Origin: Thalia democratica
Taxonomy: Eukaryota
Assembly: GCA_965202585.1 (NCBI GenBank)
Contig: OZ241828.1
Location: 52,018,001-52,082,000, forward strand
Reading direction: 5' to 3'
DNA length: 64,000 bases
Shown: positions 6,601 through 10,499 of the stretch, piece after piece
Position numbering within the stretch: the stretch's first letter is position 1
Layout of the letters: each line of letters begins with the position of its first letter
Program-made: the position numbers and the translations under genes
Notes under the pieces: generated by a model
Databases searched by the model: none
Told to the model about the DNA's origin: nothing
The model's input: only the letters and a program-made list of their open reading frames with translations

Positions 6601-7263
6601 ATGTGTAAATACGATACAATCAAACTCCAAGAACACGAATTGGATTACAAGCTGCTACATAAGGCTGCCGACGGAACCTGCAAGAGTGAAGTCTTCTACC
6701 ATTTCAACAAGAAAAATGTCAAATTTGAAGTAACCAGCATCAGTAGAGTCAAGTCGCGATCAAACATCAAAGAAGAAACTTCTAATCCGGCCAACCCGAA
6801 TCTGATGATGTTTCATGGTACGCACGGTGAGTCAATCAGAGGAATATTTAGAAATGGTTTTCGCGTTCCCGCCACGGCTAGCCACGGAAGAAGGTTCGGA
6901 GAAGCAGTGTACCTGACTCCAAGCAGCGCTTACGCTCTGAGGTTCTGCTTCAGTCACGACATGGTACAAGATTTTGAAATAAAACCGGACGGCCTGCACA
7001 AAGTGAAAATACTGGTGTGCGCGATAGCAGTTCAACCATCAGACATGCTAACATACGACCTAAAGGACCAAATAGTCGACAAAAGAGATCAAACGAAAGA
7101 AGCTGCATCTTGTTTCAAGCGCTTTAAGGAGCGTTATTCACCGGGTGATCGAAATTTTAAATTTGATAGCAAGAATAGAGTCATTAATGTAGGACCAATC
7201 AAAGACCGAGCTACCGGGGCAAGCACAAATAAAGCTTTAGATGACTATAAACTAAATACTTAA
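6601..7263 (+). pseudogene. PARP-like ADP-ribosyltransferase paralog A, copy A1 (N-terminus intact, C-terminus with catalytic Glu missing)
   Basis: 220-aa ORF with LMMFHGT (catalytic His) and FGEAVYLTPSSAYA (catalytic Tyr). It diverges from the other A copies after aaagcttt (about 7238) and lacks DEYCV. A putative 5'-UTR intron runs from ag|gtaagt (6381) to ttctttgcag| (6566). Confidence 0.8.
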
Positions 7264-7434
7264 TAACTTACTTAATTAGATGTTTCTTGGTACTTACTAG
7301 ATTAAACTTCAATGATAATTTGTTAATTTTAATGTAGATACCTTTTAGTAAATTCTTAACTTAAACTACAAATCAGCTTTAACTATGTAATTTTTACAGT
7401 TTTAAGGTTAACAGTTTTTAAGTAAGTGAAAGTT

Positions 7435-8319
7435 ATGAACAATTATAGAACAAAAGCCCTCTTAAAAACCGATCCGGATCACGACCTGCTAAAAGAAGCT
7501 ATAAAAGGAACCAGTAAAAATGATTTATTTTTTAATTTCCCAGGAAAAGAAATCAGTTTTCAAGTAGTTAATATAAAAAGAGTTATATTCAACTCAGAAG
7601 AAAAAGTTACTCTTAACCCCGAACTATACTTAAAAGGGGTAATCCCTGATAACAGTTTTGAATCAACGCCTAATCAGTCTCTCAAAGAGATGATAAGCCA
7701 AGGCGTCATTGATTCATTCGAAGAGGCTAATAACTCCGACAGATATGCTTCAAATGCTGTTGGAGTTACAATACCCACAATTAATAGTAAAAATTTGCCA
7801 GCTTTAATAGTTGAAAACGAAAAAATTAATACTAAAAACCCTCAGTTAATGCTATACCACGGATCAAAAGGTGCTTCAATTAATGGAATACTAAATAATG
7901 GTTTCAGCATTCTTGAAGAACCTATACACGGAGCAAAATTTGGCTCTGCGGTTTACCTAACACCATCAAGTACCTATGCATGCCGCTTTGCTCTCACTCA
8001 ACAGCAAAAAAAAATTTTTGCCCAAGAAGCAAGCGGAAAGATTAGAATTAAATTTTTTTCAGTTTCAGCATATGCAGACAAACTACAAAGATTTAAAGGA
8101 ACGTATTACATAGGAGAGGAAAATTTTAAGTATGATAGTAACGATAAGATTATAAACTTAGGGCCTATTAAGGTAAGAGAACCAACTGAAACAGTTGACT
8201 CGAGGCTAAGTAATTTAGTAGAAGAATATTGTATTTACAACTCTAAAGATGCTGTTCCCCAATATGTTATAGAATATGAAGTGTCTTGGGATCTGTGTGA
8301 ACATTCTAAATGTTCTTAA
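7435..8319 (+). CDS. Complete single-coding-exon PARP-like (H-Y-E) ADP-ribosyltransferase, paralog B, 294 aa
   Basis: LMLYHGS, FGSAVYLTPSSTYA and VEEYCIYNSKDAVPQYVIEY match the PARP/tankyrase catalytic triad. The N-terminus aligns with A1 (FQVVNIKRV vs FEVTSISRV) and carries an insertion of about 70 aa. First ATG at 7435, preceded by an acceptor-like tttttacag. Confidence 0.85.
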   Translation: MNNYRTKALLKTDPDHDLLKEAIKGTSKNDLFFNFPGKEISFQVVNIKRVIFNSEEKVTLNPELYLKGVIPDNSFESTPNQSLKEMISQGVIDSFEEANNSDRYASNAVGVTIPTINSKNLPALIVENEKINTKNPQLMLYHGSKGASINGILNNGFSILEEPIHGAKFGSAVYLTPSSTYACRFALTQQQKKIFAQEASGKIRIKFFSVSAYADKLQRFKGTYYIGEENFKYDSNDKIINLGPIKVREPTETVDSRLSNLVEEYCIYNSKDAVPQYVIEYEVSWDLCEHSKCS

Positions 8320-8435
8320 ACTGGTGTTCTAATTTATAAAAAAATTTATAATATTTTTGTTTATAAAATATTTCTTTTTTAAACGTTATTCTAAAAACAT
8401 ATTCTAAATCGTTAATAAAATATTCTGATATACCA

Positions 8436-8865
8436 AAGCAGCGCTTACGCTCTGAGGTTCTGCTTCAGTCACGACATGGTACAAGATTTTGAAATAAAAC
8501 CGGACGGCCTGCACAAGGTGAAAATACTGGTGTGCGCGATAGCAGTTCAACCATCAGACATGCTAACATACGACCTAAAGGACCAAAAAGTCGACAAAAG
8601 AGATCAAACGAAAGAAGCTGCATCTTGTTTCAAGCGCTTTAAGGAGCGTTATTCACCGGGTGATCGAAATTTTAAATTCGATAGCAAGAATAGAGTCACT
8701 AATGTAGGACCAATCGAAGACCGAGCTACCGGGGCAAGCACGAATAAAGCTTTGAAGGATAAGGTAGACGAATACTGCGTGTGCGACCCAAAAGATGTTG
8801 TGCCGAGTTATGTGATAGAATATGAAGTGTCTTGGACGCAGTGTGAAGATTGTAAACTTAACTAG
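8436..8865 (+). pseudogene. ART paralog A copy A2 (5'-truncated; lacks His and Tyr motifs, retains Glu)
   Basis: Homology begins abruptly at SSAYALRFC and ends with DEYCVCDPKDVVPSYVIEYEV...KLN*. Confidence 0.85.
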
Positions 8866-9136
8866 ATAGGTTTTAAATTTTAAAACAAAGTAGAATATTT
8901 TTGTATTTAAGTTTTTGTATATAGAATTTAAAAAATATGTTTTTTTAGATATAAAATTATTTCTAAAACATTATAAACTTTTTTTAAAATCTCAAGTTAA
9001 ACTTTATGTGATATAATATTAAACTTAATGCTTTGCACTAACTGTATGATTAATACTTTAGGTAGGCAGAATCATCAAAGTCATGTAGGAATGAAACATA
9101 AAAGAAGAAACTTCCAATCCGGCCAACCCGAATCTG

Positions 9137-9682
9137 ATGATGTTTCATGGTACGCACGGTGAGTCAATCAGAGGAATATTTAGAAACGGTTTTCGTGTTC
9201 CCGCCACCGCTAGCCACGGAAGAAGGTTCGGAGAAGCAGTGTACCTGACTCCAAGCAGCGCTTACGCTCTGAGGTTCTGCTTCAGTCACGACATGGTACA
9301 AGATTTTGAAATAAAACCGGACGGCCTGCACAAAGTGAAAATACTGGTGTGCGCGATAGCAGTTCAACCATCAGACATGCTAACATACGACCTAAAGGAC
9401 CAAAAAGTCGACAAAAGAGATCAAACGAAAGAAGCTGCATCTTGTTTCAAGCGCTTTAAGGAGCGTTATTCACCGGGTGATCGAAATTTTAAATTCGATA
9501 GCAAGAATAGAGTCACTAATGTAGGACCAATCGAAGACCGAGCTACCGGGGCAAGCACGAATAAAGCTTTGAAGGATAAGGTAGACGAATACTGCGTGTG
9601 CGACCCAAAAGATGTTGTGCCGAGTTATGTGATAGAATATGAAGTGTCTTGGACGCAGTGTGAAGATTGTAAACTTAACTAG
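9137..9682 (+). CDS. ART paralog A copy A3 (181 aa; H, Y and E present, first 68 aa absent)
   Basis: MMFHGT...AVYLT...DEYCV. An in-frame TGA at 9092-9094 closes the frame upstream, and homology to A1 starts at aaacat (about 9094). May be non-functional. Confidence 0.7.
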   Translation: MMFHGTHGESIRGIFRNGFRVPATASHGRRFGEAVYLTPSSAYALRFCFSHDMVQDFEIKPDGLHKVKILVCAIAVQPSDMLTYDLKDQKVDKRDQTKEAASCFKRFKERYSPGDRNFKFDSKNRVTNVGPIEDRATGASTNKALKDKVDEYCVCDPKDVVPSYVIEYEVSWTQCEDCKLN

Positions 9683-9953
9683 ATAGGTTTTAATTTTTAA
9701 AACAAGGTAGAATATTTTTGTATTTAAGTTTTTGTATATAGAATTTAAAAAATATGTTTTTTTAGATATAAAATTATTTCTAAAACATTATAAACTTTTT
9801 TTAAAATCTTAAGTTAAACTTTATGTGATATAATATTAAACTTAATGCTTTGCACTAACTGTATGATTAATACTTTAGGTAGGCAGAATCATCAAAGTCA
9901 TGTAGGAATGAAACATAAAAGAAGAAACTTCCAATCCGGCCAACCCGAATCTG

Positions 9954-10499
9954 ATGATGTTTCATGGTACGCACGGTGAGTCAATCAGAGGAATATTTAG
10001 AAACTGTTTTCGTGTTCCCGCCATGGCTAGCCACGGAAGAAGGTTCGGAGAAGCAGTGTACCTGACTCCAAGCAGCGCTTACGCTCTGAGGTTCTGCTTC
10101 AGTCACGACATGGTACAAGATTTTGAAATAAAACCGGACGGCCTGCACAAAGTGAAAATACTGGTGTGCGCGATAGCAGTTCAACCATCAGACATGCTAA
10201 CATACGACCTAAAGGACCAAATAGTCGACAAAAGAGATCAAACGAAAGAAGCTGCATCTTGTTTCAAGCGCTTTAAGGAGCGTTATTCACCGGGTGATCG
10301 AAATTTTAAATTTGATAGCAAGAATAGAGTCATTAATGTAGGACCAATCGAAGACCGAGCTACCGGGGCAAGCACAAATAAAGCTTTGAAGGATAAGGTA
10401 GACGAATACTGCGTGTGCGACCCAAAAGATGTTGTGCCGAGTTATGTGATAGAATATGAAGTGTCTTGGACGCAGTGTGAAGATTGTAAACGTTCTTAA
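9954..10499 (+). CDS. ART paralog A copy A4 (181 aa; N-truncated, G->C in the GF motif, likely original 3' end)
   Basis: Same frame structure as A3, with RNCF instead of RNGF. It ends CKRS* (gttcttaa), like paralog B (CS*, gttcttaa). Confidence 0.7.
   Translation: MMFHGTHGESIRGIFRNCFRVPAMASHGRRFGEAVYLTPSSAYALRFCFSHDMVQDFEIKPDGLHKVKILVCAIAVQPSDMLTYDLKDQIVDKRDQTKEAASCFKRFKERYSPGDRNFKFDSKNRVINVGPIEDRATGASTNKALKDKVDEYCVCDPKDVVPSYVIEYEVSWTQCEDCKRS

Follow-up and report, generated by a model that had tools for sequence, protein, structure and literature searches.

Organization of the gene cluster

We analyzed a 64,000-nt stretch of the genome of Thalia democratica (GenBank assembly GCA_965202585.1, contig OZ241828.1, positions 52,018,001 to 52,082,000 of the forward strand), referred to here as the window and numbered from its first nucleotide, which contains within 6601–10499 five plus-strand copies of one gene family, related to the catalytic domains of PARP proteins. 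Named A1, B, A2, A3 and A4 in their order along the DNA (Table 1), all copies are matched by PF00644, with scores of 50.9 bits for A1, 55.2 for B, 49.7 for A3 and 45.0 for A4 (cut-off 26.7). B is a complete gene, and the four others are pieces of a second gene, A, for which the intact natural relatives P0135 and P0126 served as reference sequences. These and other relatives lie on marine metagenome contigs, designated L001 and L003 to L006.

The open reading frame (ORF) of A1 (6601–7263, 220 aa) ends with 7 foreign codons past 7238 and a stop codon at 7261–7263. It contains His72 (in FHGT) and Tyr104 (in AVYLTP) but lacks the strand bearing Glu219 and the C-terminus. A2 starts abruptly and covers codons 108–249, so that Glu219 is present and His and Tyr are absent. 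A3 and A4 each have a 181-aa ORF corresponding to codons 69–249 (9137–9682 with ATG at 9137, and 9954–10499 with ATG at 9954), and immediately 5' of these ORFs are two upstream ATGs and three stops. The 5' edge of A3 (9062–9102) is mutated, with in-frame stops at 9059 (TAG), 9086 (TAG) and 9092 (TGA); A4 has the TGA at 9909 and both TAGs at +817 relative to A3, and retains the ancestral 3' end. When the first 44 codons of gene A were searched for across the window, the only copy found was that of A1. Farther downstream, the minus-strand remnant A5 comprises about nt 675–750 of the gene plus ~30 nt of flank; the conserved Glu of its YVIEYE motif is replaced by Ala, and in-frame stops are present.

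This anatomy agrees with a preliminary description of the locus, which had reported i) that A1 has the N-terminus, His and Tyr but loses the Glu strand after about 7238 (homology ends exactly there, at codon 213), ii) that A2 starts in mid-gene (at gene nt 321), iii) that the N-terminus is missing from A2 to A4, in which the Glu and C-terminus remain, with in-frame TGA codons at 9092 and 9909, to which the TAGs must be added, iv) that A1 shares near-identical direct repeats with the downstream copies (318–469 nt, 98–99% identical), and v) that a complete gene B lies between A1 and A2.

An upstream block of ~190 nt is common to A1, B and every A orthologue, whereas A2 to A4 are without it. The block contains an invariant T-rich tract with a YAG lying ~35 nt ahead of the ATG, an arrangement that resembles the acceptor of a 3' splice site or of trans-splicing. 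The third-position G+C content (GC3) is 0.43–0.45 in the A copies (overall G+C 44%) and also high in the A orthologues, compared with 0.25 in B and in a Kelch gene elsewhere in the window; GC-biased gene conversion or a codon-usage effect is a possible cause.

B encodes an uninterrupted protein of 294 aa, which keeps all the residues that are invariant in the family, including the His-Tyr-Glu triad. Its protein is ~38% identical to that of A, with an insertion of ~70 aa that follows the N-terminal region and a deletion of ~25 aa within the core, and the synonymous sites of the two genes are saturated; taken together, these differences indicate that B is old. The gene is part of a cassette of 1197 bp (7239–8435) consisting of the ~190-nt upstream block, the ORF and a 116-nt 3' flank, and its part 7245–7421 shares 73% identity with the block that precedes A in L006. 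The tail of A1 was considered as a relic of the A 3' end, but this was rejected since it aligns with the conserved upstream block. Among ORFs of at least 40 aa in 7239–10386 there were only B, the A pieces and short antisense ORFs inside the A repeats, and no recombinase. A word-index search with B gave no match, and an exhaustive HMMER search of 1.84 billion representative proteins with B returned A-type relatives and distant PARPs but no B orthologue. Compared with Pfam, B matched the PARP family only, and compared with PHROG it had no match.

Table 1. Features of the PARP-like gene cluster and other annotated features of the window
Feature	Position	Strand	Evidence or remark
Conserved upstream block of A1, putative promoter or 5' untranslated region	6420–6600	+	Alignment with L006, L003, L004, L001 and B
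A1, 5' part of gene A (codons 1–213)	6601–7238	+	PF00644, E 1.8e-13
J1, then the B copy of the conserved upstream block	7239–7434	+	
B, intact divergent paralog	7435–8319	+	PF00644, E 8.7e-15
3' flank of B, ending at J2	8320–8435	+	Homologous to A-type 3' flanks; repeat family D4
A2, 3' part of gene A (gene nt 321 to stop)	8436–8865	+	
3' flank type a, spacer between A2 and A3	8866–9061	+	98.5% identical to 9683–9878; ends at J3
A3, gene A from about nt 130 to stop	9062–9682	+	
3' flank type a, second copy	9683–9878	+	Ends at the second J3 junction
A4, truncated like A3 (gene A from about nt 130)	9879–10499	+	
3' flank type b	10500–10725	+	Orthologous to the sequence 3' of the one intact A of L003/L004
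A5, degenerate inverted A 3' end	14500–14606	-	Inverted repeats I1–I3, 79–81% complementary
Continuation of the orthologous downstream flank	17331–18104	+	
P450 exons	46881–47186 and 50195–50407		
Gelsolin exon	57179–57394		

Family and predicted fold

The family profile matches the catalytic domains of PARP2, PARP1, PARP12 and PARP15. An AlphaFold2 model of the intact relative P0135, made from a 25-sequence alignment, had a predicted local distance difference test score (pLDDT) of 77.5 and a predicted template modelling score (pTM) of 0.82. Compared by Foldseek with the ADP-ribosyltransferase (ART) domain of PARP1, the model gave an E-value of 4e-13 and template modelling (TM) scores of 0.67–0.69 over ~244 columns; for the ART domains of PARP1 and PARP2 together, the ranges were 4e-13 to 5e-12 and 0.65–0.70. 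Since the superposition extends over ~244 columns, the whole 247–249-aa protein is a single ART domain with nothing attached. His72, Tyr104 and Glu219 are invariant across the family (B, P0135, P0126 and P0107). In the model, residues 1–68 form a strand (4–8), a helix (14–25) and a second strand (38–52) of the ART domain. The full triad is found in one polypeptide in B and the intact relatives, and also in A3 and A4, though these are without residues 1–68; to judge from the model, A3 and A4 would thus keep the triad but lack core N-terminal elements of the fold.

The members of this family are stand-alone, intronless genes for PARP1-like ART domains of ~250 aa, with a predicted NAD-dependent ADP-ribosyl transfer activity. 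Scans with the family alignment found no relatives in the Joint Genome Institute (JGI) metagenomes or among the IMG/VR viral sequences, and there was no PHROG match; because of the latter two results, a viral or phage origin of the family is unsupported. Nothing suggests that the proteins are toxins.

Direct repeats and junctions

The locus has the structure P-Q-X-Q-R, in which Q is gene nt 321–638 and X the B cassette, followed by two further 817-nt units. The direct repeats that A1 shares with A2, A3 and A4 are identical at 312 of 318, 460 of 469 and 463 of 469 nt, respectively. The coding parts of A2 and A3 differ at a single position (429/430 nt identical), and their 817-nt units are 99.1% identical (810/817). 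Among themselves, A2, A3 and A4 differ at no more than 12 nt positions and 5 residues. The start-to-start spacings of the array repeats are 1515, 817 and 817 nt; Tandem Repeats Finder was used with a period limit of 500, and the 817-nt period is outside its range.

At J1 (between 7238 and 7239), the in-register identity with A2 to A4 falls from 100% to chance, and at J2 (between 8435 and 8436) it is 100% right to the edge and then at chance level. Microhomology at these two junctions is at most 2–3 nt. No common motif and no inverted repeats were found in a comparison of J1, J2 and J3, and inspection of J1 and J2 for terminal repeats and hairpins found none; lacking both, the B cassette was rejected as a transposon. 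Retroposition was likewise rejected for the 5'-truncated copies, which include ~190 nt of the genomic sequence 3' of the gene, lack a poly(A) and are arranged in tandem at the DNA level.

The third type of junction, J3, has a different appearance. The homology of A3 and A4 to A1 reaches ~40 nt further 5' than the preliminary description had seen, through an edge that is identical to A1 at 26 of 38 nt (P = 2e-7), a match well above chance because the register is fixed. All 12 differences in this edge are derived in A3/A4 and create in-frame stops, and 11 of the 12 are common to the metagenome contig L005.

Relatives and ancestral state

The closest relatives of the window proteins were found on marine metagenome contigs only, mostly from Tara Oceans (PRJEB4352), and exact-protein look-ups with A1, B, A3 and the Kelch protein returned no record of any. 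Matches at 57–62% identity that appeared under permissive blastn scoring were disregarded as AT-rich noise. Three lineages carry an intact A. 1) L006 encodes P0135 (247 aa), its coding sequence being 94–96% identical to the A pieces of the window and its 5' flank (1200–1643) 79% identical to window 6181–6600; the identity of this window flank to L006 and L003 is 74–79%. 2) L003 and L004 encode P0126 (249 aa) and match the 5' flank (6197–6600), the gene and the A4-type 3' flank (10500–10691), and then jump to window 17338–18104 (L004 1282–2011, E 1e-98). L003 has a single A copy, and the type-a 3' flank is also homologous to the L003/L004 3' flank. 3) L001 encodes P0107 (254 aa), preceded by the same conserved upstream block. 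None of these contigs (L006, L003/L004 and L001) carries B.

Because the three outgroup lineages share one intact A behind this 5' flank, without B, such a gene is by parsimony the ancestral state. The window region 10726–17330 (~6.6 kb) is extra, since in L003/L004 the 3' flank of A directly adjoins the sequence from 17338 onward. By the same parsimony, the break in A1, the insertion of the B cassette and the 6.6-kb segment are derived states of the window lineage. L005, which encodes P0127, has an A4-type truncated copy that is 97% identical over 9881–10635, including the mutated edge and the type-b flank. As it was recovered independently of this assembly, the A4 part of the array is real in nature.

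Several other rearrangements were observed around the locus. A second, heavily degenerate A copy lies just 3' of the intact A in L001 (1668–2225), and L006 has a different C-terminal end (2319–2557) with a 3' flank matching that L001 region; the 3' side of A has therefore been rearranged repeatedly among the relatives. Remnants of the A 3' flank (~45–120 nt) are present on both sides of the 6.6-kb segment (10684–10800 and 17331–17460), which also contains a kinase-like exon at ~15250–15340 on the minus strand, ending in GTGAGT, that was recognized by eye and has no Pfam match. Synteny with L003 and L006 ends upstream of ~6181–6197. Just beyond this point are a 20-nt tandem repeat (6080–6118) and a stretch resembling a tRNA B box (~6160–6180), and 6060–6197 may be the end of an inserted element resembling a short interspersed nuclear element (SINE).

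Selection and gene conversion

The ratio of non-synonymous to synonymous substitution rates (dN/dS) between A1 and L006 is 0.12 for codons 1–212 and 0.08 for codons 1–68, which are present in A1 only. For A3 and A4 compared with L006 it is 0.21–0.23, for the A pieces compared with L003 it is 0.16–0.19, and for the C-terminal 37 codons, present only in A2 to A4, it is 0.10 compared with L003. Since both halves were under purifying selection during most of the period after these lineages separated and the J1 and J2 edges are undecayed, the break of A is recent. J3, the truncation of A3 and A4, is older, as indicated by the 12 derived substitutions in its 38-nt edge and the sharing of 11 of them with L005.

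The coding and non-coding parts of the array have behaved differently. Between A3 and A4, dS is 0.03 in the coding sequence, whereas 47% of the aligned sites in the 3' flanks (type a compared with type b) are different, and each flank type differs by 34–38% from the L003 flank. Because selection cannot hold synonymous sites constant, the coding parts have been homogenized by gene conversion. Derived bases are common to A1 and A4 at 7164 and 7227, and to A2 and A3 at 7073, at 7184 and within the final codons. The sequence of A4 is mosaic, A3-like in its 5' part and A1-like from about nt 280 onward. The differences between A1 and A4 rise towards the 5' edge of homology, from 1 in 362 nt to 5 in ~100 nt and 12 in 38 nt, a gradient such as would be given by conversion tracts needing flanking homology. 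As these footprints show, the repeats of A1 to A4 recombine on an evolutionary time scale.

Origin of the array

We regard as likely that the locus is a lineage-specific birth-and-death PARP cluster in which A was recently broken by insertion of the B cassette together with duplications, and that it is revertible by accident, with no regulated switch. The starting point would be a single intact gene A at this site. The B cassette would then have been placed between the overlapping pieces A1 and A2, and an older 5'-truncated copy of A4 type would have been amplified into the 817-bp tandem unit of A2, A3 and A4; unequal crossing-over is the most likely mechanism of this amplification, given the near identity of the A2 and A3 units. 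J1 and J2 would be illegitimate joins from one replication or repair accident, for which three routes fit the structure equally well: i) a template switch during replication, or a tandem duplication combined with templated insertion, copying B from elsewhere, ii) gap repair from an ectopic B-A array, completed by end joining, and iii) homologous (Campbell-type) integration of a circle of 1515 bp that contained X and Q. The A1-like character of the repeated segment of A4 is not predicted by a simple ectopic-repair model, and the pattern of shared variants requires later conversion events in any in-situ model. Gene conversion would afterwards have maintained a near identity among the A pieces in their coding parts.

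B is probably the sole functional gene of the cluster. A1 to A4 are most likely pseudogene fragments, since A1 has no Glu and A2 to A4 have neither the upstream block nor the N-terminal core. As the pieces overlap as direct repeats, a rare spontaneous homologous deletion could nevertheless restore A and remove B: a single in-register deletion, 1515, 2332 or 3149 bp in length, would be enough to give one full-length A without B. The preliminary description had recognized this geometry and predicted a product of 249 aa, a size matched by the intact relatives of 249 and 247 aa. It had also expected up to three variants of the rebuilt enzyme; there are indeed three downstream partners, but the diversity is lacking, as the products would differ by no more than 5 residues. 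Direct repeats of 318–469 nt lying 1.2–2.7 kb apart would be expected to recombine occasionally, here with an intact A lacking B as the product, and we infer that the restorability of A is an accidental property rather than a regulated switch.

Several observations weigh against this interpretation. All the A pieces keep open frames, of 195–224 codons, compared with a mean stop-to-stop distance of 11 codons in the window. The 14 variants that distinguish the copies comprise 7 synonymous and 7 non-synonymous changes (binomial P = 0.015), a split that speaks against neutrality because neutral decay predicts a larger non-synonymous share. Residual constraint or function may be responsible, as may conversion from a functional A at another place in the genome; as synteny is lost upstream of ~6181–6197, the locus could itself be a duplicated copy, and an intact A may lie at another site. 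After a simple in-situ insertion, it takes at least two conversion events to give the shared-variant pattern. Finally, J1 and J2 were seen in no independent sequence.

Alternative explanations

This last point would be explained if mis-joined haplotypes or a repeat expansion in the assembly had produced the array or its copy number, and the 99.1% identity of A2 and A3 over 817 nt is similar to the haplotype level. We nevertheless hold such an artefact to be improbable. The window contains no N, each copy has private variants, and J1 and J2 join A to unique sequence of the B cassette, joins that a haplotype duplication would not create; moreover, the truncated A4 unit was recovered with its own 3' flank in the Tara contig L005.

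The preliminary description had offered two interpretations, a scar of a circle-mediated insertion that broke A or a cassette switch between A and B. The core of the former is borne out by the intact A without B in three outgroups, the purifying selection on both halves until recently and the sharp J1 and J2, the circle itself being one of the three candidate routes. The latter, in which deletions between A1 and A2, A3 or A4 would be used somatically or as bet-hedging in the population, is unsupported, and we consider it very improbable. Its appeal is that the geometry is exact and in register, that the collapsed form (A1 5' flank, intact A, A4-type 3' flank) exists in L003/L004, that the copies demonstrably exchange sequence, that variants within the array do not look purely neutral, and that PARP genes are often fast-turnover immunity genes (PMC4038475). 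However, the interrupting segment has no recombinase and, B apart, no other enzyme ORF, no signal motif common to the junctions was recognized, the downstream copies are without the upstream block, and there is no cassette diversity, the copies differing by at most 2% of nt and 5 residues. A deletion is irreversible and hence gives no switch within a lineage. The collapsed forms observed are orthologues diverged by 5–19% rather than alleles, the closest sample (L005) has the truncated form, and parsimony over three lineages makes the intact A ancestral.

The pieces might instead be functional as they are, A1 as a Glu-less NAD-binding or regulatory protein and the 181-aa ORFs as short enzymes, or be joined at the RNA level with B as intronic sequence. 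The open frames and the low non-synonymous to synonymous ratio among the copies are in keeping with function, as is the 181-aa ORF of L005, which is conserved at 98.5% compared with 90% identity in the flank. We find this no more persuasive than a switch, as A3 and A4 are without the first strand, the first helix and the second strand of the ART domain (4–8, 14–25 and 38–52) and without the upstream block, two upstream ATGs and three stops lie just 5' of their ORFs, and the conservation of the ORFs is explicable by gene conversion. Joining of A1 to the downstream copies in the RNA is improbable; in the segment that they have in common AGGT occurs just twice, each time in a context poorly suited to a splice donor or acceptor.

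With similarly slight probability, the array may be a naturally maintained 'pre-mutation' in a minimal PARP family of immunity type, in which recurrent collapse and re-expansion or re-insertion would produce a selected presence/absence polymorphism through general recombination; the collapsed relatives and the non-neutral variants of the fragments would then be traces of such a population-level toggle.

Least credible of all is the reverse direction, in which the split array with B would be ancestral and the relatives' intact A a product of collapse between A1 and A4, for although L003/L004 have exactly the structure that such a collapse would give, and the divergence between flank types a and b is as great as that of each from the orthologue, so that J3 may predate the species split, independent collapses would be needed in three lineages (L006, L003/L004 and L001), both halves have dN/dS values of 0.08–0.23, which a long-split gene would not keep, the J1 and J2 edges show no accumulated divergence, unlike the J3 edge, and B-type genes are absent from all sampled relatives.

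Other features of the window

The window is ~24% G+C and contains multi-exon animal-type genes, including those with the P450 and gelsolin exons listed in Table 1; a scan of the window for tRNA genes found none. An intronless BACK-Kelch gene at 27209–28546 on the minus strand encodes 445 aa and is without a BTB domain. Its protein has more than 100 relatives at 33–58% identity, nearly all of them on marine metagenome contigs in ENA, evidence of an extensive lineage-specific expansion. At 37355–37397 on the plus strand lies a type I hammerhead ribozyme (34.8 bits, just over the gathering score), and two adjacent ORFs at 45040–45651 on the minus strand have a GIY-YIG-like motif by eye and no Pfam match. 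The ribozyme and these ORFs may be remains of a Penelope-like retroelement.

Comparison with known systems and significance

Drosophila white-ivory is a revertible allele caused by an intragenic duplication. The p-un (pink-eyed unstable) allele of the mouse carries a ~70-kb tandem duplication in Oca2, and loss of one repeat restores the gene (PMC8345144); mice engineered with a partial duplication of HPRT serve as duplication reporters with the same reversion logic (PMC4546575). The Thalia locus resembles all three in that a gene is inactivated by an internal duplicate in the same orientation and its two truncated halves together hold the complete ORF. As in the p-un type, loss of one repeat through homologous recombination or single-strand annealing would restore one copy, and the intact single-copy form is ancestral (L006, L003/L004 and L001). 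Unlike in that type, the repeats are separated by 1.2–2.7 kb of foreign sequence that includes a complete paralogous gene; they are only 318–469 nt long and offer three alternative downstream partners. In p-un reversion is observed, whereas the revertibility described here is predicted from the sequence geometry.

The vertebrate PARP14 and PARP15 genes undergo gain, loss and truncation in an immunity-linked birth-and-death turnover (PMC4038475). The Thalia cluster shares with them tandem paralogs, lineage-specific copy number, truncated or pseudogenized copies and one strongly diverged paralog (B). In contrast to PARP14 and PARP15, its genes are intronless, encode the ART domain only, without macro, WWE, zinc-finger or helical regulatory domains, and have been found in no sequences other than this genome and contigs of the Tara Oceans metagenomes. 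The homogenized coding parts, the degenerate copies (A5 and that in L001) and the varying copy number are as expected of tandem birth-and-death combined with concerted evolution.

In Bacillus subtilis, skin interrupts sigK, and in Anabaena an element interrupts nifD; such elements are excised as circles in terminal differentiation by an element-encoded site-specific recombinase acting on short (5–11 bp) specific repeats. Here too a coding gene is split by a gene-carrying insert, and excision through direct repeats would yield a rebuilt ORF and a circle. The differences are that the insert encodes no recombinase, the repeats are long segments of the gene itself, the borders J1 and J2 have no short attachment repeats beyond microhomology of at most 2–3 nt, and the host is an animal-type eukaryote. 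Unlike the variant surface glycoprotein (VSG), mating-type, variable lymphocyte receptor (VLR) and V(D)J systems, the locus has no repertoire of sequence-diverse silent cassettes. No motif or inverted repeat common to J1, J2 and J3 was recognized, though a dedicated signal of an unfamiliar kind may be present.

If the locus is an accidentally broken member of a birth-and-death cluster, it would be a natural example of a repair accident that breaks a gene yet leaves it formally revertible, and of gene conversion making dead fragments look alive. The family itself would be a previously undescribed one of minimal, single-domain enzymes predicted to be PARP1-like. For annotation, the 181-aa and 220-aa ORFs are a warning, as they can be called as genes though they are probably fragments; this has already happened to P0127, a public metagenome gene call of 181 aa that is the truncated A4-type ORF. 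Should collapse of the array prove frequent or regulated, the locus would be a rare animal case of gene reactivation by recombination between direct repeats.

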